A DNA stretch of 64,000 nucleotides from Auanema rhodensis (taxonomy: Eukaryota > Animalia > Nematoda): NCBI GenBank assembly GCA_964057225.1, contig OZ059899.1, forward strand, positions 12,772,001 through 12,836,000, written 5' to 3'. Below the pieces are notes generated by a model, which saw nothing but the letters and a program-made list of their open reading frames with translations, searched no databases and was not told where the DNA came from. Of the stretch, positions 18,304-37,800 are shown one piece after another (position 1 is the first letter of the stretch; each line of letters opens with the position of its first letter). The translations under genes and the position numbers were made by a program.

Positions 18304-21300
18304 TAGTAGACAGTTCAAAAGTCAAGTTGAAAAATAGTAAAAGAACAGAAGATGAAAAGAATTTGACCGAATATTCTCAAGCCTTGTTTTGACCAACAAC
18401 AACCAAAGTTGAAGAGACAAGAAAGAACTTTGTGTTAAAAATGGGCAATGAAAAACACTAAAATGAGAAAAAAAAGACCAGATAAGATATATCAAATTTA
18501 TAAATCTTTATAAAAAAAAGTTCAAAAGAAAAAAAAATGACGAGAAACAAAACGAAAGAACATAAACAAAATGAGAAATTAACAACAAATCTGTATAATA
18601 GTTTGATTGAAATCATATTGCCAAATAGGAGCAGCATTGGGAAAACCTAGACATTTGAATGCAAGGTTTCAGATTCTCTGATGGCCATCTCTTTCTCCTC
18701 CTCTTTTTCTGGTTTTCTCTCCCTGTCTCTTCTGTCTTTTGGTCTTCTCTTCAGCTCTATACTTATCCTTCCATGTTCATTTTCTTACTTTTCGTTATTC
18801 TTTCTCTCTCTCTCTCTCAACCTCTATCGCTTTCTCTTTCTCTTTCTCTCTCAATCTCACCCTGGTCTTGTCTCTTTTTCTCAATTTCTTGCTCTCTCAA
18901 ATTTCCAATTTCTTTCTCTATATAAGCATACACACCTTTATTACTTAGTTGAGATAAACGAATGTATTTTTGGAAGCATTTATCGAATATTATTAAGTTT
19001 CAGGCATAGTTGCTTACATAGATGTCTGAAAACTACAACGTCGTATCCTAAATAAGTTTCAATCCGATTTGAAAATGTTATTAGCAGCTTGCTTCGACTA
19101 CATCGTATTCTATCAATTGGTAAAATTGGCCTGGGTGACAAGATGCAAAAAAAAACGAAGGAAATATGACAACATTGAACAGATGAGTTGACGATATTTG
19201 CGTACATTAAGTCAAATGCAAATTTGAAAAATATGAAATCAAGCCAGTTATTGAATTAACTAATGGTCTTGCGATGAAAAAGGATATTAACGACGTTATA
19301 TGAATACAAAGAAGATGAAAAAGAAGCTGAGCAGCTGGCAGGTGATGATGATGATGATGATGATGTGTGTGTGTGGGTTGGGAGGAGGGGTTTTTAACCT
19401 AGATGAATATGAATATGCTAGGATTTCGGACAGGCCACCTGTAAAAAAATAACAAAATAAACAGAAAGAGAGGGGATTCGTAGAGAGAGAACGAAGAGAC
19501 TTCTTAAATTGACGTCTGATTCTTCGGTGAGTTGCAAGTTGCCAGCTGTAGTTCTAGCTTCTTTCTTTTTATTGAACATCGTAAAGGCCGAGGAAAGGAA
19601 TTATGCGAAGCAGCATGATGGACGTCTGAATGTAGACGTTTTTAGGAGCTAAGCTGACTAAGAAAGTGGAAGAAGAGAATAGCAGAGAGAAGGAGGGAGG
19701 GAGGGAGGGAGGGAGGGAGGGAGAGAGAGAGATAGAGAGAGAGAGAGAGGGGTGAATGAGAGAGAGACAGGGGTGAATAAGGGAAGCAAACGAAAACGAA
19801 GTAGTTTGCTGGATGTAAAGAGTTGGGAGAATGTAGAGAAACAGAAAAAATATTCAAAGAGAAATGAGTTAGGGAGTGAGAAAGAGTAGTAGGGAAGTAG
19901 ACAATGAAAAGAGGAGGGCGTGGAGAAAGAGAGAGAGAAGTAGCATGCGTGAGCTAAAGCATACATGCGAAGTAACATAGGTTGGATTGGAGAGAGAAGA
20001 ATAACGCTAAAGATAGAGAAGAAAGATATATATTGGCTAAATGCCAGAACTTATGGCAGCAATGCAAAATAGTACTCAACCAGACTTGAAATGAAGGAGA
20101 ACTGAGACACATCCAAGCTTATAACTACAGCTATGCTAGTGCGCTGCTATTGCTGCTGCTACTGCTGCAGCTGCTACTGCTGCTGATGGAAAGGCTCCTG
20201 CCATACATGGAAGGAGTGAGCGGCAAGATTGTCAGTCTAGAGATGCAGACGAAAGATTGCGGAAACGAGTAAAAGAGAAACAGAAGGATGATCATGAGGA
20301 AAAGAGAGAAAGCAAAAAGATAGCAAAAATAGAGAAAAACAAAAAAGAATGGCAGAATAGAGATATATAGGGAAAAGAGGCAAATGATGCTATGACTGAA
20401 TAGAGAGAGAGTATAGGACGAGAAAAATATAGAACAGAGGGAGTAAGCTGGATCGATGAGAGCCCGAGGGGAAAGAGGAAAGCCGCGCGGAAAAATGATG
20501 GCGGTTGCTTAGTATTTCAAGAGAAATACAGAAAAAGAAGCTCTGAAAAGGAAGATAGCTTCTGAAGACGAAGGGAAAGATCGAGAGAATAGGATAGCAT
20601 CTCTGGAAAAAGGGGGGGGGGGAGGAAAAGAGATGGAGCAAGAGCATGAGAGAGTAGAGTGAGAGGGTGTGATGAGGAAGAATAGGCGGAGGATGAAGAA
20701 GAGAAACGAATACATGTCTAAGTATAGAGAGCTGACAATCCAAAAGGCTTATATAAGCATGCTGATTTGTCTATGATTATTCACTATAGAATAAGATAGG
20801 ATTTTAAAGAGGATTGAAGAGTATTGAGCATTGAGTGAAACGAATACAAAGTAGAAAAGAGTATGAGATGAATGGAGAGAAATACAGGATATGCGAACGT
20901 GAGAGAGCTACTAAGATTTGGAGGGCAAGAGGGAAAGAGAGAGAGAGAAAGATTGAAAAGAAAATGAAGATGACGAAAGACATTGGAGAGTTTCAAGTAT
21001 GAATTTTGAACGAATGAAAATTGAAGGCTGAACTTCCGATGTGCACATATACATCCATCTATCCATCTATCCATTCATCTATGAATATGGATTTTCAATT
21101 TTTTGATTTTTTCGACAAATGAACTATGACGTATAGGTTATATATATATATATTTCTTAAAAAGCATCAAGCACAAGTACATAAGGATTGAAATGAGCGA
21201 TGAGTCGAAAAAAAATCAGAAAATTCGGTGAATGATGTTCGAGATGCGAAGCGCAGTTAGTTTTGAGTCATGTCAGTAACATCTAACAAAAAAAAGTTGA

Positions 21301-23052
21301 AGAAAAAAAAATACATATATACATATATATTTGCACAAGCTATTTTCGGATGTATCCGAATATATTTTTCAATACATTTTTCTTTTTTTTTAATATTATC
21401 GTCTCATTTTGGATAGCTTACGAGGTTTGATGTTCAATAGTTAGCTAAGCTTATTCGTTTCGAAGGCTAGCTCGACGGCTGTGGTAAGCTATTACATGTT
21501 CTCGAATAATTATTGTTGAACAGAAAAATATTCAGAAAAGATCATTTGATTTCATGTCGTTGGTTATTATTAAATTACCTTGAAACATAGGTATGTGATA
21601 GATTGCTGAAAACTATTCTGACAGATGTATGCATATGTATGGCTTTGTAGGGTGGAGGGGGAGGAGAAGGAGTGAGTGAGTGTGTGTGTGCGTGTGTGTG
21701 TGTAGGTAGGTATGTAAGAGGTAGGCAATGTTTCATGTAAGGCTGAAGAAGTGCAGCGGTGCACAGCTGGATATTCAGTTGTCAGTATCAACAGTTTCTT
21801 TGAATAATCTAGTTGAATCAATATACGTGAAAAAACAATCATTAATCCTTCTTTTTATTCGTCCTCATCTGTTTTTTTTCTTTTTCTTCAAGGAAATACA
21901 TCCTTTTTTCTTCTGGCTTTTTGCGTTTGTTTGATGAGAATACGGCTTTGGATGAAAAATATTTCAATTAGAATAATCGTCATTATATCTTCCAGAAGAT
22001 TCGTCTTTTCTTGGAAGATTTATAAATACCCGAATAGACAGAAAAGGCTCTTGAATAAAGTTGGTTGCACCCAACTGTGATATATGCAGTTTCGGAAGAA
22101 ATCATCTGAGGTTGTTGAAAGTGGAAGAGGAACTTCATTATGGTTAACATCATTCTCTTTCTGTGCACTTAAGCAAGGATTAGTTGTGCATTAGCATAGT
22201 AAAAAGTGTCAATTCTCACGTGAACGTGAGCAGTTCACACGTAAAAGATAGATGGGGCGTGCTTGCAAACGTCATTTTTAAAATGTGGCAGATAATAAGC
22301 GGTTGTTTATGACGTTACATATCATCAAATTAGTTATATTAATTATATTTGTTTTTAATTAGTTTTTTTGTATATTTTACAACATAAAACTATTCAAATA
22401 TATTGTTTACATATATATATTTATATTCTATATAATTTTAATTTATTCAAAAATGAATATCTAAACATAATTAATTTTTTTTAAAAATGAAAACAAAATT
22501 GCACAATATTACGAAAACTCATCTGATAACAGTAGTATCAATTTTAGGAAGCACGTAATTTTTCGATGTTCACAAAGATCAGTTGAAGTTGAAATTGTTT
22601 TTTCATGTATCGCTATGGGGGGAGAATTAGTAAGCTTGATAAGAAACATCCGTATGATAAGATGACTACAGCGACTAGCAGTAGATTCAGAAGCATAAAA
22701 GCATGTTGAACGATCATCACACTATAGACACTTATATTTACATACATAATGTGATTTTTATTGAATTATAAAAATAGATTAAGATTATAAATTTTTATTT
22801 TTAAAACATTTTTCAATTGTTTTATATATTATATATTATATATATTTGTTCTTAAATACATAAAAGGACATACATTTTCATAATCATCAGAAGAGGCAAA
22901 AATTTGAGCAGGGTAGTAGGTAGTGTAGGTGGTGGTAGTAATAGAGTAGTAGGAAATTTGGGATGCAATTTATGCAGTATACAACAACATTAATTTTAAA
23001 GATAACATACAAATGTAGGTTCAGAAAATCATGGAAAAAATAAAACAAGAGA

Positions 23053-23095
<43 letters not shown>

Positions 23096-23555
23096 GGAGA
23101 GAAAGAGGGAGAGAAGGAGGGAGAGGACGCACAAGAGAAAGCAGGCAAGCTTAAAAGAAAAGGTATTGCTGTTAATCGAATGCAAAAATGAAACAACATT
23201 TCGAAATATGTTGAATAAATGAGTAAAAACGTATAACTATATACAGAATTATGTGAATTCAATTAACAATGTATAAAAGCTAAAAAGCTTGAGCTTGACT
23301 GATTTTTTTTTCATTTTCCACCTACAAATTTGGTGTTTGCAATCTGATAATATGCATATTATATATCAGGAAAATATAATAATATTAACAACAATAACAC
23401 ATAAAATTAATCTTCTCATTATGAGAAATAGATTTTTAAATTATTTTATACATAAAGTTTTCTTGATTTCGTTCATGTTTTTCCGCGAGAATTCATATAC
23501 ATACATACTATATAGCGAATAAAAGGCTGTTTCTTACTTCCTTTGCAAGCTTATT

Positions 23556-23589
<34 letters not shown>

Positions 23590-23753
23590 ACAACAAATTG
23601 TCTATTTCTTTCTTAATAACATGTTTTCTCTTAGATATCTCAATGAACCGAAATCTGTTTTAGTCGACCCGTAAAATGGCACATGAGTTTCAAATTTTCC
23701 AAAAGTGTTCCTTTTTTTTTTAAAAAAAAAAAAAGTTGTGAGGTGCAAATTTT

Positions 23754-26700
23754 TCATGTCACAATGACTTCAGTATCTGAATCTCCATTTGAAGCTGTAT
23801 CACTTCCTTTAATTTCCGTCACATACTCCGCTAATAATGCGTCAAATTTCAAATATTCCAGCGATGGATGAGTTCTGAAAAAAAAAAATTATTTTTTTCC
23901 ATTCAAAACCACAAAATTTTTTTTTTTAATTGGGAAAAAGAAGATATATATATATATATGTAAATTATCGATAGAATATTACTTTTATTACTGTTTTTCC
24001 AGGTGATTATAAATAAAAAAACATTATCAGATGCTTACCTCATATGACTTCGTATTCCACGTATGCTATACCCTCGATAACCACACTCTTTGCAAACATA
24101 AGCCTGGAAATTGTAGTTTCATGGAGAGATTTTCAAGAATTATTTTAAAAAATTTCCATCAAATTACGAAAAATGAAATGCTGAAGGATAAATGTTCAAC
24201 ATTCTGTAGTAATTTGACGTTAAAAGACGTTGTTGATGGAGAGAGAGAGAGAGAGACCGTACCCGAACATCGTTGTGTACATTCCGAATATGAAGTGATA
24301 GCTGGGATATAGACTGTGGCTCGTAGGAGCATTGAGAACAACGCGATGGCAACTAAATTTAATTCAATCATCTCTAAGTTCAAATACACCAAATCATATC
24401 AATTTTCAAAGAAATTCATATATTTATCTTCACATTTAGATATACATCAGATGATATTTCTTAGTATTATCAAAGTTTTCTCAAAGTTTTGAACGAAAAC
24501 AACAAAAAAAATGAAAAAGCAAATGAAAAACGAATGATGAAGTAAATATATATATATATATTTATATTCTATATATATGTATATTTAACTATATTTATAT
24601 TTATATTAAATTAGAAATCGAAAATCTTTTGGTATGTTTCATTAAAAGCTTTTCCTGAAGGTCACACCTTCCGAGTTGGTTCACGATGATCCTCAGGTCG
24701 TTCCACATGCTTACAGTAGTATTGCTTATGTGCAGTTAGATTAATGGATGATTGGAACGTCACACCACATGTACATAGAAAAGGCTTTTCAATATCCAAT
24801 TGTCCATTTGCGCCAAGAACCAGGCTTGGAGGTGTTGCTCGAGATATGGTCGGCTGAAAAGCAAGAACATTCATCTCATTCAGTATTAACCAAAAGAGAG
24901 AGAGAGAGGGGATGGCGGGAAAGTTACAGCATGCTAAGGTTGTTTTCAAAACCCACCTTTTGGAGATCTGTTGTGTTTTGAACAGTTTGTCGTAAACGTT
25001 TTTCAAAATCCAATAGAGCGGCAGATGACCGATCAGCGGGTCGTTTGAGCGTTAAGGAAGTTGGAGTTGTTGTGGTTGCTGTCGGAGTTGATGAAGTAAC
25101 AGTGGATGATGGGCTGAAGACTGATGTTGAGGTGCTTGGCCTAGAAGATGCATAACGTGAATTTTGCCGGAAAAAGAGTTACTTCTCCGAATCAAACACA
25201 AATCAATAAGCTATATAAATAGCTTAACTTAGGCTAGATAAGTATTAATTCAAGTTTGTTCAAGTTTTTAAAACTTACATATCTATATGTACCATAGGCA
25301 CTGTGACAGAGATACCGTCATGATTAAAGTTGATAGAACTTGGCGGTCTTATTGAGTTACATGCTGATTTCTAAACAAGCAACATGCTTCCTTTTTAAAA
25401 AAAACTAAATGAAAAACCTGTAAAATGAGCGAATTTGTTTTAAAATTCTGTTTTCCCACAGCAATAGGAATGAAAGTTTGAGCAGGGCCGAGAATCTGTG
25501 ATTGTATTCGGTTAATGTTTGAGTATTCTATACTTGTATGATACCTGAATGAGATCTTGCTGAGTTTCATTATGTTGGGCAACCGGTAAGAGAACTATAT
25601 TTGATGATGTTAATGGATTTGTTAGACCAAGAGGCAATAAGAATGTTGGAGATGTAGCTGGTGTCGTAGTTGATACACTTGGAATTATTCCATTTGAAAA
25701 TACTGGTATTTGAGCTTTAAGAGCTTGAGAATTTGGCAATTGATTATCTGAAATCATGAAAATATATTTATTTTCTCTCATATTCGTCCCCTTCACGTGA
25801 AGTTCACGTAAATCTCATTTATGGTATTTGCATGGAAGTAACTGGTTGCATCATTTAGCGTTAGGATCATTAATTTTCGTAAAATCTGTTCTTCTTCGAG
25901 TCAAGTCAAAGATTGAAAAGGCAAAATTTGAAAACTTTAATGTTTAGACGACTAGATGGAAGTACTCTCCAGATGGCATGAGGCGTTATCTTGATTGCTG
26001 GAACCCATGTATGCAAGCGTATACACATCAGTTGAGACAAATTGCATACATGACAAGTTAAGATGATCCTGGATATCAATATTTGACTTCAATCGAAGGA
26101 GAAGAAGAAGAAGCTTGAGAACAAACTAGGTGATGAAGAAAATGAAGAGACCTTAAGCAAGTGAATGAACTTTTTATATTTTTGAAAAATGAACTGGATG
26201 GACCCTGGGTTTTGTCCAATCTTATCTTTTTTTTCGTTCCGTAAGAGAAGAAGGAAGAAAGGGGTGCAGATGAGGAGCAATAGCACGGTTCGGTGAAGCA
26301 AAAACAGACAGATGATGAGAGTTAATGCGAAATGAAGAGACAGTAGGAGAGACAAAAGGCAAGGCGAGCCGATATGAGCAAGAGAGTTAGATCAACGAAG
26401 ATAGATAGCTAAGAGTCAGATGGAAATCTAAGATAAGGAAGATGAGGAAAGGAAAGTGAAGACAAAAGTAGCAGTTTTAAGTGTATTAACTTTCCCTCCC
26501 ACTCTTTGTTCCCAAGTCTCTCTCTCTCTATCTCTATCTCTTTCTCTCTATCTCCTTGTGTGTATATTGTCTTCTGAATTTGAGATTGAAATCAGAAAAG
26601 CTTTCAGGAATTCCGCATAGAAGCTTAGTAGCGTAATAATCATCCAGCTTGTAAGCAAAACTGGAATACTAGCAACTAATCATCTAAAGCTTTATCAGTT

Positions 26701-29700
26701 AAGCCGTTTATAAACAGATTTTCCCCACTGTATTCTCAACTGAATGTTTGCCAAAAATGGATTTGTACTGTCAATTGATAATCAAAGAAACTTACTTTCT
26801 ACTTTTTTGCAATATTGTTGTTGATGGACAATCAAGTTATCAATATTTTTGAATTTGGCCAGGCCACACTGGTCACAAGCAAAAGCTGAAATGAAAAAAT
26901 ATGTTGAAATGACAACATTGGCTTGGTGTTCGTACGTTTTTCAACTTCAATCATCTTATCGGCTGGTAGAATCGTTGGCATTGTCATCGGAATAGTTTCA
27001 GGAAGCATGGATGATGATGTAGATGACGTTACAATGGGTGTAATAAGAATTGTGGTTAAGATAGGTTCTGAATGTCTGATATCTTTTGTGATTGTCATCT
27101 GAATCTGATCCTCGCCTGAAATGACGCAAGTATTAACGAAAAAATATGAAACAATGAATGTTGTAATGAGGAAGCCATTGTATGAATGCTTATAGACAAT
27201 GAATGGACACATGCTGTTGATGTTCAATGTTGCTATTACTTATCCAAAAACACAGATGATTCACAATAGATAGATAGAGTGTTTAAGGATTTAGGATGTG
27301 AAAGCCCCTCTGTTTGCCTGTAACTTCAACTTCATATCAACCATTTTGTCTGTGTTGTCGTTGAGTTCATCATTCTTTTCTTGGACTTTTACATACTCAT
27401 GACTGCACTGCCACGTTCAAAGTTAGCTCTTATCTCTCTTTTCTCTCAACAAAGTAAATTCTCGCAATTTCCGCTTTGAACACTTCAAATGTAAATTTAA
27501 GAAATGAAACTTTTAAACAAGCCAGCTATCATTAGATAATTGATAGATTAGATGAAAAATGAAGAAAAATGTATTCATATTCATGTGACGTTTCAGAACT
27601 GATACACACACACACACACACAAGGAGAAGAAGAAATACTCAATTTCCTTTGTAGGTGTTAAAATCGGTGCAAGATTCTTATTCAAGCTTTCTACTTCAT
27701 TAGTCGATGGACTATAGATAGGTAGATAACTTGAAAGAGACAGAGAGAGAGGGAGAGAGAGAGAGAGAGATAGAGATAGAGAGAGAGAGAAAAGTCGTTT
27801 CAATGTTTGTGTTCTTTTAGTTTATCATTAAATTTGATAAGATTTTAAAAAGAAAGGGTTCCTCTCTATCATACTCTTTGAAGATCTCAAATTATGCTGC
27901 GTATCATTAGATGTAAATAACATATTATTTGTAAATAAATGAAAATTAATTTTCAAATTAAGAAATGAGGAAGATCGATAAGATGTTGAGGAAGTTACAA
28001 AGCATTTAAAACCAAATCTTATCAAGTTATATTCAAACATAATGCTGATTTTTGCATTTGTGCTAGCTTAGGTTGCTTGTTGTTATTGTGTTAGAACTTG
28101 AGAATGGTCGAATACTGCTGCTACCTTTCCTACTGATGTTCCTTTATTTCTAGTTTTCTCTCATCCTCTTCAAAGGTTATCTCTGCATACTAGGATCTCC
28201 AACTTCTTTCAAACTGACTCATCAGTATCAATACTGAAGATGTTATCGGTGAATAATTTGTAATCCAGTTGCCTGGTAATTATAATTTCATAATAACGTC
28301 ATCTTTACTCTCATTTATTCATGTTTTTCGGCAAATCGACGTCAGTAGTGTACATAAGCTGCAGATGCTTCCGTTGTCGTCGTGAGAGAGAGAGAAAGAG
28401 AGAGAGAGTGAGAGAGTGAGAGAGTTGCATAGAAGATACTTAGGACTATCTGTATAGGAAAAAGGGCAAGGGAGGTCCCAATGGCTTCATACTCATTTTC
28501 ATTTTCATATATCATATGATGATTGGGGGGGTCTTATCACCTCTATTACCTTATCATATTCTTCCTATCAACTTACAGCTATCATTATAGAAAGTGGCAG
28601 ATTTCAACAACTAACATACAAATAAAGAATGTTTGAGAAGAAAAATTAAGTTTTTCCCATTCATAGTTATGATATGAGAGCAGAATGTGCATGATCCTTT
28701 CGTAATTTGTTCTCTTTTCCGCTTATTCCTCAACATACAAAACATAAAACTTACAAACGAAGTAGGCTATGGCATTAGCTGTACGTGGATCGGAGCACGC
28801 TTTGATACGTTGAATTATTGGATCTCTATCTAATACTTCATACACGTGTAGCAAGCCCAACTGATCAATCAACTGAAATATGACACATTAACAACTTCTC
28901 TCAGCTTTTCCAATTCATTTTTTGATCAAAAAAGTCGTGGAAAACGTACGGTTATCTCGATGCCACTGCAAATCGTTCGCCTATCAGTTCTTTTCTTAAC
29001 ATGAAAAGGACCTTTCGTATCTCCAGATTGAAATTCTGTTGTCAGAGGCAATACGAGCTGATGGTGACCGCCACTATCAAATTTGGTTACATCGAGTCCT
29101 CCGGTCATTTCCAATACATGAAGAATCTGAAATCTGTGGGTATTGCACTGTTCAAGTTCATATGCTGAGAATTGAATGTTTATAGTGGGTTCGGATGAAT
29201 TTGGGTGGATGTTTTTCATTGAAACTATGTAATATTACATAGAATGAAGTGCTAACATCATATATTTACATGAGGGAAGCAAAAAAGGACGATGAACTGT
29301 GTTACTCAAATAGCAGAAGCAGCCACATCAGCAACAGCAGCAATAGGACAAATGATGAGAATGATGTTCCTTATCACACTTATACAAGAGATTTAGAATC
29401 AGATCAGATGGCAACAAGCCAATGCTCTATGCTGCGATAAAAAGAAAAACATAAAGAAGAAGAGGAGGAAGAAGAAAAAGAAGAATTAGATGAAGATGAT
29501 GAATGAAAGATATTCCTTTTGATTATGAAACCAAACACTAAAATGAATTTATTTTTACGAAAAATTAGAAAAGAAGAACATTAACTGATACGAGTGAGCC
29601 ATATTGAATTAACAGAAAAATATGTGTTAAACGGAGGTAAAACATATGAAGATTACAAAAGAAGTTAAAGATTACATAAGAAAATAATAATAAAAAGAAT

Positions 29701-29865
29701 TATAAAGAGAAAAAGAGAGAGAAAGAGAAAGAGAGAGAGAGAGGGAAGAAAGATAGAAGGAGAGAGATAATCGCAAAAAAAAAACAACAAAAATAATTTT
29801 TATTTGAAAAAAAAATAAAAAAATAATGAACATACCGTTGATAACTCTTTCGATGTTGCAGCCAT
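23754..29865 (-). CDS. PR-like domain + CCHC(FOG-type)/C2H2 zinc-finger protein, Friend-of-GATA/U-shaped-like
   Basis: About 13 exons join in frame. MAATSKELST, then a PR/SET-like region (GDTKGPFHV...IKACSDPRTANAIAYFVCEDQIQMTITKDIRHSEPIL), CCHC finger FACDQCGLAKFKNIDNLIVHQQQYC (~26800-26885), an S/T/P-rich linker, CCHC finger FLCTCGVTFQSSINLTAHKQYYC (~24715-24785), and C2H2 fingers RCSQCSYEPQSISQLSLHIRNVH and YVCKECGYRGYSIRGIRSHMRTH. Stop at 23754. Confidence 0.82.
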
Positions 29866-29939
29866 TATATATAAATTTGAATATAAGATAGAATATATTT
29901 ATTCTGGAAATGAATGGTTATATATTGAATACTGAACAG

Positions 29940-29993
29940 TTATCAGGAGAATGAAAGAAGTTCTCTTATCAAACTTTATCGAAAATCTGATAG
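29940..29993. promoter_or_regulatory. GATA-site cluster upstream of FOG-like gene
   Basis: TTATCA (29940), TTATCA (29966), TTATCG (29976) and TGATAG (29988) within 54 bp, ~75-130 bp upstream of the ATG. Confidence 0.5.
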
Positions 29994-30230
29994 GAGCCAA
30001 TAATTTTGATTAGAAGTTCTACACTAAAAGGAAGAGAAATATGTAGTTAGAATATAGATTGTATGAATAATATGTATATGAATAAAATAATAAAGTTTTA
30101 AGATTTTATATAGTTAAACTTAAAGTTTAAGTTTGAGTTGATTAAAGTTTGTCAAATTAATTATACAGGATATAAAAGACTATAAGATAATATAGTGTAG
30201 ATAAAGAGAGAATAGAGAAATAAAGAATAA

Positions 30231-30233
<3 letters not shown>

Positions 30234-30294
<61 letters not shown>

Positions 30295-30346
30295 AAGAGA
30301 GAGAGAAAGCAAGAGAGAGAAAGCAAGAGAGAGAGAAAGGGAGAGA
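30234..30346. repeat. (GA)n microsatellite, compound
   Basis: Long GA tract with interruptions. Confidence 0.95.
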
Positions 30347-31021
30347 AAGGGAGAGATGAAAATAAATTTAAATACAAAGATATAATCAGTGACATCAGGA
30401 TATGAGAGTATGAATGTTAGAATGATCTCGAGAGAATACAGATCTGTAGAAGGAGTTTAACATTACTTGAATTGATTTAAATTTCAGCGATAAACTGCCA
30501 AAAGAAGAAAAAGAGAGAGAGGGAGATTGAGAGATTGAGAGAGAGAGAGAGAGAAAGAAAGAGTGGAGGGTAGAGAAGGATTAGCATAATAATAATGATG
30601 ATGTTCTTAAAACTAAAACAAAGTTAGATATGTAATTCAAAACAAACAAAAAAATAAGTATAATATATTAACTAAATATATTATTAATATTGTTGTATGA
30701 TTAAAAAAAATATATATAAGTATTCTAGAGTGAAAACAGATACTGTTTTATGCCTATTTTTATTCTTTTGCTATCAGCTTTCTGATTAGACCTACTAAAT
30801 CTAATAGGAAAATGTTTTCCTTTGACAAAAAATTTAAAAAAATTGATTGTTAGTATTTGATGATGTAATAATGATGATGTAGGGAGTACAAAATGAAAAA
30901 GAGTAAAATAATTAGATATACAAGATAATAGATGAAGTTGAAACGAATGATGAGCTATATGAACAAGGACGACAAATGGTGAGAAGCGGTGAGGAAGTGA
31001 ACCGGAGCTAAGGAAAAATGA

Positions 31022-31055
<34 letters not shown>

Positions 31056-31706
31056 GATGATGAAACCGTTCTGAACAGCTGCACGTGCATGAAATGAATG
31101 AAATTAGCATAAACTATTGATGACGTGTACACGTGTTATTATTAATTTTCATTAAAATATAAATTAGAATAAAGTATACGTCATACTATATGGAAGTCAC
31201 ATAATATGTCTGATAACAATAAGTAAGATGAAGAATCATTTATGTGAATATATAATATAATAATTATATTATATTATATAGAAAACAATATATATTGTGT
31301 GTAATCATATGCTGCTATAAAGAGTATGTGAAATATGAAGTTCGAAAGTGATGTTTCGTTGGGAGGAGCTAGAGAAATGTATAGCATACATACATCATGA
31401 GCATGTTTTGAAAGCATTTTTTTTTTTTTGAAATGTTAATCATCTTAGAATTATATTATAACTTTATAGTTAAACAAATATATATTATATATACTTTATA
31501 GTTAAACAGATATGTTTGGTGAAGCAAAATGTATACGGAATTCTAAGAATGATAGAAAGTGGCAAAAAAGAACCGGATGAACTATCTCTCACGGAAAGCA
31601 ATTAGCTTTTATCTGAAGAACGTTGATGTAGACGTGTCGAGCCCTACTGCTGATAAGAAAATAAGAACATAACAGCGAAAGAAAAACGAAAATGGCCATA
31701 ACATAG

Positions 31707-31710
<4 letters not shown>

Positions 31711-31761
<51 letters not shown>
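31711..31761. repeat. (GA)n microsatellite
   Basis: About 25 perfect units. Confidence 0.95.
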
Positions 31762-31767
<6 letters not shown>

Positions 31768-33301
31768 AGAGGACTGTGCAGAAATCTGTAAAGTTCACGA
31801 GTTATCAAAACGAATGAAGTATTTCCGAAGAAATGGGTGTGGACTTTGTGATGAAATAAGTTTAATTCTCATTGCTGTAATGATGATGATGATGATGAGA
31901 ATGAAAAGAAGTAGTATTAGTAGTCGTGGTAGTAGTTGGATCAGATTGATAAGAAATGAATCAGCAAAGGATTGCTATCGACTATTTACTCATTGATATA
32001 ATATTGTAACGATGTCCTCAGTTTATAGATGAATCGATTGAGAAGTTATTGATAAGATTAGGAGGTAGAGGTGAAGCTTGTAAAGTTGAAAGCGAAAAAA
32101 AACAGTGCAAAAGGGGAAGAATTTGAACTATGACTTGAGTAATTGTGGCTTAATGAGAGAATTAGAGAGAAGGCAGTAGGACTCACAAGGACTCAGTTGA
32201 GCTGGTGATATGGAAGGTGATAAGAGCGCACATGCGTCTGAGAATACTTATGATCAATGCATGAACTGATGATGAGAACGAAGCGGTAGTGAGATGCAGC
32301 AACACAATGATAACGACAACGAGTAGATGTAGATGGAGTTAAAGACGACGGCAAATGGGATAGAAAATGAAGGAGGAGCCAGATGGCTGAGTAAAGATAT
32401 GTAGAAGGCATAGAGAATGCAGTGTTATTATGACTTGCCGTCGATAAGACATAGCTATAGATAAGATCTACGATCACTATACGAAGAGAAGAGGATGAAG
32501 AAGAAGAAGAAGAAGAAGAAGAAGAAGAAGAAGAAAAAGAAGAAGGAGAAGAAGGACGACAACGACGACAACGATAGAGATGTCAAGACAGATGTCAGGA
32601 CCATCCTGTCGTAACCGCGATTTGGTCAATTTTTTTGTGTTTTTTTTTTGCTGTTTGCCGGTCAGATTAACTATGCCTTATCAATCAAACATTTTTTTTT
32701 GGAAGCAGGAGGACGGAGGGAATTATGTTTATATAGTATCAGTGAATTCTCACAACAGAAAAGGAAAATGCTCTCTCTCTCATATGGAAACTACGCTAAA
32801 ATTGAGGAGGAATACCTTCACTTAGACATTTGAAGTAACCAGGCTTTAAGCTTATCAAATAAGCTTAGAATACATCTTAGGTTCAAATTGAGATGAGTTT
32901 CATAAAAATGTTGTCAAATAAATATTTTGTCTTTTCTATAGATTGTTAAGCTATACTATACGCTTGATATTACCAGAATAATGCTATTCAAATGACTATT
33001 TGGTACAGTTGGATGGTTATTCATGTTTTTAGACGTTCGATTCAAGCTGTTGAAATGCTTGAAATTGAACTTTAATGTTAAAATTGTAAAAAAAAGAATT
33101 TGTTTTAGAGATTTTTCTTGATTAAAATCGATATCTAAACATCGCTTTTAAAATTTCCTTGAGATTATATCTCTGGAATAGAGACGAGTAGTATCAAATA
33201 GAGAAATTTAAAGATTTGTGATTGAAGGAACGCCAACAAATCTTTTTAAAGCTGGACATAAGGTTCAGAGGGAAATATCTTATAGCAAACAGCATAAAGT
33301 T

Positions 33302-33303
<2 letters not shown>

Positions 33304-33353
<50 letters not shown>
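33304..33353. repeat. (GA)n microsatellite followed by poly-G
   Basis: GA tract running directly into a G11 run. Confidence 0.95.
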
Positions 33354-33355
<2 letters not shown>

Positions 33356-33612
33356 GAGCTGTAGAAGATATAAGTAATTGTCTGATGAATAAATGAAGAA
33401 ATCTATTGAAAATCTATTGAACATGGTCGAGTTATATGGATGATAGGCTATTTGTGCTAATCAGAATATCAATTGGTACGGAATTGATGATATCAGTAAC
33501 TGTAATCTATCTATCTTCTTTTATTTAGTTGAAGTAAGTTAACGAATATTACAATAAATGAAAGAAAGAATGATAGTTCGGGAGTTATTCCTTTTTGGGG
33601 TTAATAATACCT

Positions 33613-33613
<1 letters not shown>

Positions 33614-33670
<57 letters not shown>
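33614..33670. repeat. (TC)n microsatellite
   Basis: About 28 perfect units. Confidence 0.95.
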
Positions 33671-33673
<3 letters not shown>

Positions 33674-34862
33674 CTATCTATCCTTTTCTCATTTTTGGAG
33701 GATTTCTAGTAATTGTATAGACATAATGTCACATTCCTTGTGAAGGTTTCTTCTTAAATGTTGGAACATAACATCTTCAGACATAATGCGCTACTGAACT
33801 TTCTTGAAATAGCTACATACATATGGTATGATAGACTAAGGACGAAGTGTCTTTTAGAGACTAAAAGCAACTTTTTTTGTGAAGTTTGATGAATATTCAG
33901 AGCTGAAGGAGGGGGGGGGAGCAATAGAAAAAGCTTAGAAAAGAATGTTATGTATATACTACGTGTGATAGGAAAACGAGATTGGACAAAAGATAGAATC
34001 TTCAGGGGGGAAATGAGGAAAAGCTCTATTGCTCTTTGCTTTGGTTTCACCACGAATAAACGGTGAAGATGGTTGAAGGAAGAACACATAGGCATGAATA
34101 GAGAAAGAGGGATGAAGCAAGATAGAGAGGTGAAGAGAAATAGAGACGAACTGAGAGAGAGAGAGGACCATATAGATATTCGCAGAGAATTCAAAATGAG
34201 AGAACAAAATAATAGAAGAGAGGAGATCTTTGAAGAGGAAAGAAATAAAGAGAGAGAGAGAGAGAGCCAGGGAGAACTCTCCCTGTGACAGACGAAGATC
34301 TGAGTTTCTGATAAGAATGAGGAAAAAGCTGATGCCTCAAACCTCTCATACAAACATACAGGAATTTTTAGTTTTTTCTCATTTCAATTGTTCTTAAAAT
34401 AGAAAAAAGAAAGATTTGTTGTAAAAAAAAGATTTTTTGAACGTTAATCATTGATAACAGTGAGTCATTATGATATATCATTCTATTTAAAGTATGAGGG
34501 CTTCAACGGCCAGATAGATGATGTTGTTGCTGCTGCTATTGCTGCTATTGCTGGATATGAGAATGTAGATAGCTGTATTGCTCTGTATTACTAAGATATT
34601 ATGTTATTAGCTTTATTAATTATTACAATATAAATTATATAATTCATCAAATACATTTGAAAGCAGAAAGAAGATTCTGGAAGCAAAATCTTTGTTTCAG
34701 GCCAATTTACCGAGATATGTAACCGTGATAGCACTTGATATCATCTTGAGTTCTGCACGCAGTGTCATCATGTGCAAATTTTTTTTTCAAAAAAAATAAG
34801 AAAAATATAATTTTAAGCAGAAAAATTTAAAATATTATTAAAGAAAAACAGGATTTGATGGT

Positions 34863-37800
34863 CTATTTTGAATAAAATTTCCTATTTATGAAGTTTTTCA
34901 GGTTGATAATATCAAATTCAAGAATATCATCAATGTATATATGTGCTTGTACAGCTTCACGCTGTAGCAAATCCTGAAAATTGATTCAAGTTAGAAAAGA
35001 GCTTTGAGAAAGAAAATTACAAACCTGAAAATCAAGTTGCAAAGAGTTTATAACAGTCTTATTGTCTAATATAACAACTTGAAATATTCCTTTTTTACTT
35101 GTTGTATTGAAATCAACGTTCAACTTTGAAATTCTGAAAATAATAAGTTGAGATAATGCTTGACACTCAGCAGCAACAGCAGATAAAGCAAGAGATAAAG
35201 CTCGTTAAGCTGTTCCTACTGGTGCTGCTGCTCTTGTTGATGTTCCAACTTTTTCTGATAATTAGAGACGTTGAAGGTGATTACAATCTTCTTTCTTATG
35301 AGCTTTTCCATTGTAACTCGATATGTTGATAGGAGACAAAGAGAGTGACGTTCCTTCTGAATCTTTCCAGCTGTCTTCGTATCTGGTCGGAAAGACATTC
35401 GTCTAAAGTACAACTAGATGTAGATGAGAAACAACTTTAAACATTTCAACTTCATCTTATAATCCATCTTTTTTCATTTTCTTTGTCTTCTTTTTTTTAG
35501 ATTAAATAAAAAATATGAGAAGAATGTCATGTTATATTCAAATTTTTACTAAACTTTTAATATTATTTTAACTATTTTCTAATAATATTTAATTATATTA
35601 ATTATAACTTTATATTTTTACTTTATTATAGATTTAATTTCTTTTTTTATTATTATTTTAATTCATATTAGAAGAAAATTAATTTGGATAAATTCTTATA
35701 AGCTCTTTTCAAAATACTCTCTCCGAATTACTAGTCTGGTAAAGCATTTTAGTTGTAGATAGTTAGATTATTCAGTGGATAGGAATAGTAAGTTGAGATT
35801 GAAGTGAAGTGTCATCTAGAGAATCTTGAATTGATAATTCTCAAAAAAGAAAAACAACAAGAAGCTGAGGTGAATGGAGGGAAACGGTATTGAAGTATTG
35901 AATGATTTCGCCCCCCAGATATTGAATTTAGCTTACTTGGATGTTCTGCTCAGATTATCAAGACATGTTTCCAAATATTCTTCATAATGCTCAAGTTTTT
36001 GATCAAGTTCATGACGTAGCTTCTGAAAATAAAATTGATTTTAAAAATAAAAAAGTGCGTGAGGCTATACCACTAATTTTATTTCCGTTGCTGTTAAATT
36101 ACTACGAAGTTCAGCACGCTCTTTACGTCTACGAGTAGCTAATCGAATATCCTATAATATAAATTATATTAATTATACAAATTATAATTATATAAATAAT
36201 CTTTTTTACGTTAGCAATTTCAGTAACAATAGTCTGATAATCATCTGATGATTTACTTCTATTCATTTTTTCTAATTCAACTAAATTTTCCCGAACTTGT
36301 TGTTGTTTTTCTTTGATAGAACATCTAAAAATATAATTAATTATATGTATATTAATAACTTATATTACTTTTCAGAATTATAAAAATCATTATGAAGTCG
36401 GATATTCTCTTCCGTAGGTTCAGCATCAAGTAATTGTGGAATTGTAGTTCCATTCACTCCAGATAATAGTAAATCCACAATAATTTTCTTTGTTCTAATA
36501 ATAATAAGAATTATTAATATTATTATTTCTAATTATATTAATAAATAAGATTTTATTTGAATTTTTGCTCTTTATTCATTGAAACCTTTTGTAAAACTTT
36601 TAGGCTTCAAGCTTCATGTTGGATAAGCTCAAATATCAGGCTTAAGATTGATTTATGTACCTGATGAATAGCTCTTGCATGGCTGATCGTTCACTAGATA
36701 TATCCTTCATGGGATGAAGCTGAAGCCAGACCGTCTTCTCATCTGATGATCTGTCCGGAGCTGAGCAATTAGCTAAAAGGTTATGTAGCTGCATTCCAGT
36801 GCCGGGAACAATCTAAAGAATGATGAAAATTAAAAAAAGAAGTTTGATATATTCATACCACTGGAGCATTAAGCTTTAAGAACTTGAGAATGATTGTTAA
36901 CTGTTTTTCCGTTAAGCTTAAAGTTGGTTTATGAGCTGGATCGAAGTGAGTAAGCTCGTTCAATCCATAAATATCTTCCAAATTAACTTCTCGAACTTGT
37001 TTATTTATATAATTTCTATAAAAAAAATTAAATGAATTCATAAATTTACTGAAACTTACAAGAATTTTTCATTAATGATATGAATATCTTTATTCAAAAT
37101 ACTCAAAAAATACTTTGAATTACCGTACTGAAAGATGAAAAATACAATTTTCGAATGTAAAATCAATCTTACTCCACGATTCTTAATACCATAATCAATG
37201 AATTGAACAACAGCTTCAAGTAGACTACATGATGAATCCTTCAACTCAATACCAGCAGCTCGGAATACAGCTCGTCGTGAGACCAAAAATGAATGAAAAT
37301 AATTCTGAAAATGAGAATATATCAAGTCTTTCTCATCAACGATGATTAACGAACCTCAAATACAAATTCTGAGACAGTTCGAGTTAAGTCAACTCGTGAT
37401 GCTGTTGGAAAATGACGGAATAAGATGTCATCAAGATATGCTGCCAGATATATTACGCAATTTCTATTTAAAAATTTATTTAAATATTTGATTTTTCTAT
37501 TAAAATCTTACGGTAATTTATATTCTTGTATTATTTCATCAACTATTATTTCACTCCATTTAGATAAAAATGAAATGGAATCATCTAGAACCTGAAAAAG
37601 AAAAGACTTGGTTAATGCTTATCAAACTAGGCTGGAAATCATGCTGAAGATATGTACAAACCTTTTTGACCTGCGCATTAGCTAGCATTACTTCAATATC
37701 GTCTTTATCACTTCCCGGATATATAGACTGTGGATCCAAGTTAAAAACTAAATTCTCTCCGCTTTTAACGAATTCTTGAAGATGAGATTTCAATACAGTG

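Follow-up and report, generated by a model that had tools for sequence, protein, structure and literature searches.

A 64-kb stretch of the genome of the nematode Auanema rhodensis (G000:C7:12772001-12836000, AT-rich at ~33% GC; here called the window) carries on its minus strand, at window positions 23754-29219 and possibly extending to 29865, a real single-copy, multi-exon gene for a nuclear 'multitype' zinc-finger protein of ~500 residues. Two of its four fingers are of the Cys-terminated CCHC type and, among the matches listed from solved structures, find their best resemblance in finger 1 of U-shaped, the Friend-of-GATA (FOG) protein of the fly; the same worm genome encodes a GATA factor whose N-terminal zinc finger (N-finger) looks competent to bind a FOG. 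The reading we favour, tentatively and with somewhat less than even confidence, is that the gene may encode a highly diverged and compact FOG-like cofactor, an unproven candidate whose CCHC fingers would dock on an N-finger of the ELT-1 type. To our knowledge nematodes are usually treated as having no Friend-of-GATA, and ELT-1 is, so far as we are aware, the one nematode GATA factor that keeps a vertebrate-like N-finger. A candidate partner gene permits a direct test of why that N-finger is conserved; if the reading is true, the gene would be a measure of the reduction and divergence that a cofactor can undergo without losing its docking finger, and if it is not, the gene is one more lineage-specific zinc-finger factor.

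The two CCHC and two C2H2 fingers lie within 3 kb, three of them intact and the fourth split by an intron, with the off-consensus spacings that a preliminary description of this DNA had given for the CCHC pair (x13 in finger 1 and C-x-C in finger 2); the finger strings quoted there were likewise all recovered on the minus strand by six-frame reading. Finger 1 (FACDQCGLAKFKNIDNLIVHQQQYC, 26809-26877) has the spacing C-x2-C-x13-H-x4-C and finger 2 (FLCTCGVTFQSSINLTAHKQYYC, 24713-24775) the spacing C-x1-C-x12-H-x4-C, followed by finger 3 (CSQCSYEPQSISQLSLHIRNVH, 24275-24340) and finger 4 (CKECGYRGYSIRGIRSHMR, continuing with TH beyond the intron, 23868-24094). A regular expression for fingers gave four matches in the window, three of them in the gene, and since 50 Markov shuffles yielded a mean of 0.3 (maximum 3) the cluster is real and more than chance would produce. 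Both CCHC fingers end in an H-x-x-(Y)-Y-C tail, and they are 52% identical to each other, with 14 invariant positions in common (F.C..CG...F....NL..H.Q.YCK.VE). The C2H2 pair is joined by a canonical 7-residue linker; finger 3 has its nearest PDB relatives in fingers of ZFP64, ZFAT and CTCF and finger 4 is of the generic C2H2 kind, so far as can be read from them indicating no particular family.

All searches, folds and alignments were carried out exon by exon, and relatives of the fingers were sought among solved structures and in the worm's own genome (181 Mb, 112 contigs). Searched by itself against the PDB with phmmer, finger 2 matches U-shaped finger 1 (1fv5, also contained in 1y0j and 2l6z) with an E-value of 3.7e-4 and 13/27 identical residues, the alignment extending through AH..YYC.H, and it additionally matches U-shaped 1fu9 (E 0.0023); the proteins that outrank U-shaped in this search are multi-finger proteins that do so only by summing weak classical domains. 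A profile made of the two CCHC fingers recovers U-shaped finger 1 from the PDB with a score of 30.4 bits (E 3e-6); this alignment covers positions 3-29 and takes in the final Cys. Classical fingers score at most 16 bits per domain against the profile, their alignments ending at position 23-24 (four alignments listed). U-shaped finger 1 is thereby the best single-finger match among those listed from solved structures. Scanned over the worm genome the same profile returns fingers 1 and 2 themselves (77 and 74 bits) and next a match of 24.8 bits confined to positions 1-23, so the fly FOG finger, at 30.4 bits, is closer to the CCHC pair than are the other fingers found in the worm. These matches support the view that the two CCHC fingers are FOG-type in nature, as judged from their sequence.

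The structure 1y0j, in which U-shaped finger 1 is deposited together with the GATA-1 N-finger, also provides the comparison for the putative partner. A two-finger, ELT-1-like GATA gene lies at C4:7410028-7411432 on the minus strand, and its N-finger is identical to that of human GATA-1 at 42 of 50 positions and matches the GATA-1 N-finger chain of 1y0j with an E-value of 5e-22. It keeps the FOG-contact valine of the CVNCG motif, which GATA-1, GATA-4 and Serpent use to bind FOG proteins. In both vertebrates and flies, FOG binding needs this valine (PMC8844375). The conserved ELT-1-like N-finger is consistent with a FOG-like partner and would fit one, without demanding it. Elsewhere in the genome there are five further GATA-finger matches (C4:7.011 Mb, C1:7.281 Mb, C6:10.795 Mb, C7:6.578 Mb and C5:14.373 Mb); an intron cuts three of them after finger position 24.

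In the mechanism we propose, the two-finger GATA factor of the worm would offer its N-terminal zinc finger as the docking site for the CCHC fingers, and contacts with DNA or with other proteins would be made by the C2H2 pair and the N-terminal region; we infer that the protein may bind GATA, act as a repressor and descend from the FOG lineage. The wider proposal, that nematodes keep a cryptic, miniaturised and fast-evolving FOG with two CCHC fingers, which would be the missing partner of the strongly conserved ELT-1 N-finger and would work without the NuRD and CtBP motifs on which FOGs of flies and vertebrates draw, we regard as doubtful.

The gene model comes from a six-frame reading of window positions 23000-30500, in which GT-AG splicing with consistent phases joins the exons into a protein composed of a ~190-residue orphan N-terminus, a CCHC finger, a ~200-residue Ser/Thr/Pro-rich linker, the second CCHC finger and the two C2H2 fingers. 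Searches of the gene's introns and of the region upstream for further fingers found none. From 5' to 3' the model consists of:

29836-29865, minus strand: possible first coding exon, MAATSKELST (ATG 29865-29863, then GTATGT); doubtful and without independent support
28950-29219, minus strand: exon a, N-terminal orphan region containing FQSGDTKGPF (alternative ATG 29219; donor GTACGT after 28950; single copy)
28755-28872, minus strand: exon b, N-terminal region, LIDQLGLLHVYEVLDRDPIIQRIKACSDPRTANAIAYFV (between acceptor tatttcag and donor GTAAGT; phase 1 at its end)
26936-27115, minus strand: exon c, EDQIQMTITKDIRHSEPIL and then a Ser/Thr/Pro-rich stretch (acceptor catttcag; phase 1 to 1, fitting exons b and d)
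26796-26885, minus strand: exon d, CCHC finger 1, whose ligands fall in 26809-26877
25545-25747, minus strand: exon e, low-complexity linker with NQLPNSQALKAQIP (acceptor gatttcag, phase fitting exon d; donor GTATCA)
25279-25495, minus strand: one small linker exon or two, with 25418-25495 and 25279-25370 as candidates (ambiguous model)
24957-25140, minus strand: exon f, Ser/Thr-rich linker with LLDFEK (codon score best in the proposed frame)
24668-24853, minus strand: exon g, CCHC finger 2 at 24713-24775, FLCTCGVTFQSSINLTAHKQYYCKH (single copy)
24263-24352, minus strand: exon h, C2H2 finger 3 (Pfam zf-H2C2_5, E 1.5e-5)
24039-24103, minus strand: exon i, C2H2 finger 4 up to the intron, AYVCKECGYRGYSIRGIRSHM (ends in phase 2 at GTAAGC)
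23754-23874, minus strand: exon j, end of finger 4 (R-TH), acidic C-terminal tail and stop TGA at 23754-23756 (acceptor tttttcag)

The split codon AG+A across the junction of exons i and j encodes the Arg of finger 4. Between exon e, which ends in phase 0, and exon f, which requires phase 2, an enumeration of GT-AG chains leaves 75 open solutions. The 5' end is similarly ambiguous. The frame of exon a is open from 29234, and the upstream exon beginning at ATG 29865, proposed earlier as the start of the gene, has its ATG and donor and can be joined in phase to an acceptor at 29128 (atttcag/ATT); it is nevertheless doubtful as the true start, being one of several candidate 5' ends, and ATG 29219 is equally possible. 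Upstream of exon a, on the same strand, an open stretch at 29331-29426 (LPSDLILNLLYKCDKEHHSHHLSYCCCC) is rich in Cys and His without a recognisable finger spacing. Long (GA)n/(CT)n-rich tracts flank the gene (window 18600-21100 and 30100-34400, with GC skew up to 0.49) and translate to LSLSLS runs in several frames, and similar short tracts occur within its introns, for example at 27700-27800 and 28390-28440. At the far end of the window, positions 1-1700 are GC-rich (55%), with a cuticle-collagen-like open frame of Gly-X-Y repeats on the minus strand and a proline/glycine/alanine repeat on the plus strand.

Several results weigh against a FOG-like identity, the first set of them in the N-terminal region, for which a PR/SET-like domain had been proposed. 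Exons a, b and c gave no Pfam match even at E 10 and no meaningful PDB match. Exon a, compared with 1.84 billion representative proteins, returned only two repeat proteins, both judged spurious from their sequence, and no usable match in the ESM Atlas (recognition score 1322). In six-frame genome scans PF21549 (PRDM2_PR) found only a blmp-1-like and a set-17-like gene, at 27-46 bits per exon, with no match in the zinc-finger gene, and PF21182, the FOG1-like PR model, found nothing, its sensitivity being lowered by the division of the region over three exons. Exons a to c, aligned pairwise to the PR exons of the worm's own blmp-1-like and set-17-like genes, gave no significant result, and an AF2 model of exon a alone is uninformative, with a predicted local distance difference test (pLDDT) score of 47. 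What is left of the proposed domain is a likeness of motifs read by eye: FQSGDTKGPF corresponds to LQRGTVFGPY of the set-17-like gene, and NAIAYF, followed after 12 residues by DIRHSEPIL, corresponds to NVIAFQ, 12 residues and PIEKEEEIL. This resemblance may serve as a lead, not as a test. U-shaped itself is reported to lack a PR domain, while vertebrate FOG1 and FOG2 have one (PMC4146578), and a protostome FOG would therefore not need it.

The two genes that PF21549 finds in this genome lie on the same contig. The blmp-1-like gene (C7:13.674 Mb) has five classical fingers. The set-17-like gene (G000:C7:14098630-14099009, minus strand), 1.3 Mb from the zinc-finger gene, is a PRDM9-type SET gene whose PR/SET domain is clear; it also has a zinc knuckle (CDKCERFFRGACKDH) but lacks a zinc-finger array.

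The second set of contrary results concerns the fingers and the motifs around them. PF25445 (CCHC_ZFPM2), the curated FOG-finger model of Pfam with a cut-off of 27 bits, scores 14.2 bits (E 0.041) on the exact exon of finger 1 and 13.9 bits (E 0.052) on that of finger 2; it is the sole Pfam family match of finger 2, and finger 1 also matches zf-C2H2 (E 0.011). Since both fingers fall far below the cut-off and a classical blmp-1 finger reaches 15.9 bits, above either of them, Pfam alone says little. Neither CCHC finger has the canonical FOG spacing C-x2-C-x12-H-x4-C, finger 1 having x13 and finger 2 C-x1-C, and the gene has only two such fingers, compared with the five of Ush and FOG. In the minus-strand frames of window positions 20000-36000 neither the RRKQ motif for NuRD nor the PxDLS motif for CtBP occurs, as described earlier, and LLDFEK is present in exon f. 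GATA N-fingers are moreover conserved also for reasons besides FOG binding. No orthologue was found: a word search with the finger-2 exon was blank, a metagenome scan with it gave 597 pattern matches of which 0 were confirmed, and the ESM Atlas returned generic C2H2 clusters only; because pieces the size of an exon cannot find full-length proteins in a word index, the blank searches are uninformative on C. elegans and other nematodes. The literature searched likewise describes neither a nematode FOG nor a C. elegans orthologue, which is weak evidence of absence. Because the curated profile stays below its cut-off, the canonical spacing is not found and the co-repressor motifs are lacking, membership of the FOG family cannot be claimed. 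Of the hallmark originally seen in a PR domain combined with Cys-terminated fingers, the fingers have stood, with U-shaped finger 1 as their best match, while the PR domain went undetected and the FOG-finger profile gave 14 bits where 27 are required.

The possibility that another gene of this genome is the better FOG candidate was rejected after a genome scan with PF25445, since the profile never reaches its cut-off and the remaining matches are noise or classical fingers. Its best match, at 22 bits, is a lone CCHC finger in an unrelated large gene (G000:C6:15462463-15462546, plus strand) with a canonical C-x12-H-x4-C finger tail, CRNLFRSVPNFLTHKRTYC; the first Cys of this finger is apparently in the preceding exon, and its host gene has other atypical fingers, such as LKCTLCGAGSFFCTDMRSHLMERFC.

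The same observations can be read as those of a lineage-specific, fast-evolving zinc-finger factor that has no interaction with GATA and whose FOG-like Cys-terminated fingers arose by convergence or belong to a shared ancient finger type. We hold this to be possible, on the unlikely side. Such a factor would account for an exon a that has no homologue among the 1.84 billion representatives and a low Atlas recognition score, for the off-consensus finger spacing and for the missing co-repressor motifs, and the FOG-type evidence comes from a segment of ~27 residues. Within that segment, however, the likeness to U-shaped finger 1 exceeds the zinc ligands, taking in CG, F.SS, L.AH and YYC.H among the 13/27 identical positions, and it exceeds the likeness to every other finger found in the genome. 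That two fingers retain the same tail further suggests constraint.

A PRDM8/13-like layout fits the architecture about as well as that of a FOG, and the gene could accordingly be read as a diverged PRDM8/PRDM13-class or orphan PRDM factor with a decayed PR domain, an atypical finger, a long linker and three DNA-binding terminal fingers, with no dedicated link to GATA. Finger 1 follows directly on exon c and fingers 2-4 are encoded in the last four exons, a 1 + 3 arrangement that matches the 'terminal three zinc fingers' of PRDM13 (PMC5576485), and the canonical linker between fingers 3 and 4 agrees with it. The PR-like motifs GxxxGPF, NAIAYF and DIRHSEPIL stand in the right order with set-17-like spacing. 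Prdm8 and Prdm13 are ancestral in nematodes (PMC4760075), and because the PF21549 scan yields only the blmp-1-like and set-17-like genes, the genome offers no other Prdm8/13 candidate. Single PR exons of those two genes nevertheless score 27-46 bits, whereas exons a-c give neither a PR profile match nor a PDB PR match, and their alignment to the worm PR exons is not significant. The second CCHC finger moreover sits inside the terminal cluster, in contrast to PRDM13, in which the terminal fingers are classical C2H2. Prdm13 has also been reported lost outside Trichinella (PMC4760075). On balance we consider a PRDM origin improbable.

A pseudogene in decay, or open frames that stand together by chance, would be a very improbable explanation of the gene: its model is read from the DNA alone, its 5' end and the exons at 25279-25495 are ambiguous and finger 2 has an unusual C-x1-C knuckle, but all zinc ligands are intact in 4/4 fingers, no stop codon breaks the frame of any proposed exon, splicing uses canonical sites whose phases match, and codon usage scores higher in the proposed frame than in the other two for exons a to g.

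Among known systems, the blmp-1-like and set-17-like genes share with the zinc-finger gene its chromosome-scale contig and a weak motif likeness around GPF/GPY, N.IA[FY] and E..IL, and differ from it in matching PF21549, at 27-46 bits per exon. PRDM8 and PRDM13 (and ZNF488) share with it a plan in which one finger adjoins an N-terminal domain and a long linker of low complexity leads to a cluster of terminal fingers; in PRDM8, too, the first finger has a terminal Cys. For PRDM13 this plan is described in PMC5576485. The worm gene differs from them in having no detectable PR domain, in the second CCHC finger of its terminal cluster, and in its terminal fingers, of which only fingers 3 and 4 show the TGEKP-type organisation of classical tandem fingers. 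Compared with the FOG family (ZFPM1/FOG1, ZFPM2/FOG2 and U-shaped) the worm protein is about half as long, ~500 against ~1000-1200 residues, its x13 and C-x1-C spacings and its score below the PF25445 cut-off set it apart, as do the missing NuRD/CtBP motif and FOG1-like PR match, and its GATA binding is predicted; canonical FOGs have nine fingers in total. What the worm protein has in common with the FOG family is the combination of Cys-terminated CCHC fingers ending in H-x-x-Y-Y-C with C2H2 fingers, in a genome that also encodes a putative GATA partner whose N-finger is conserved.

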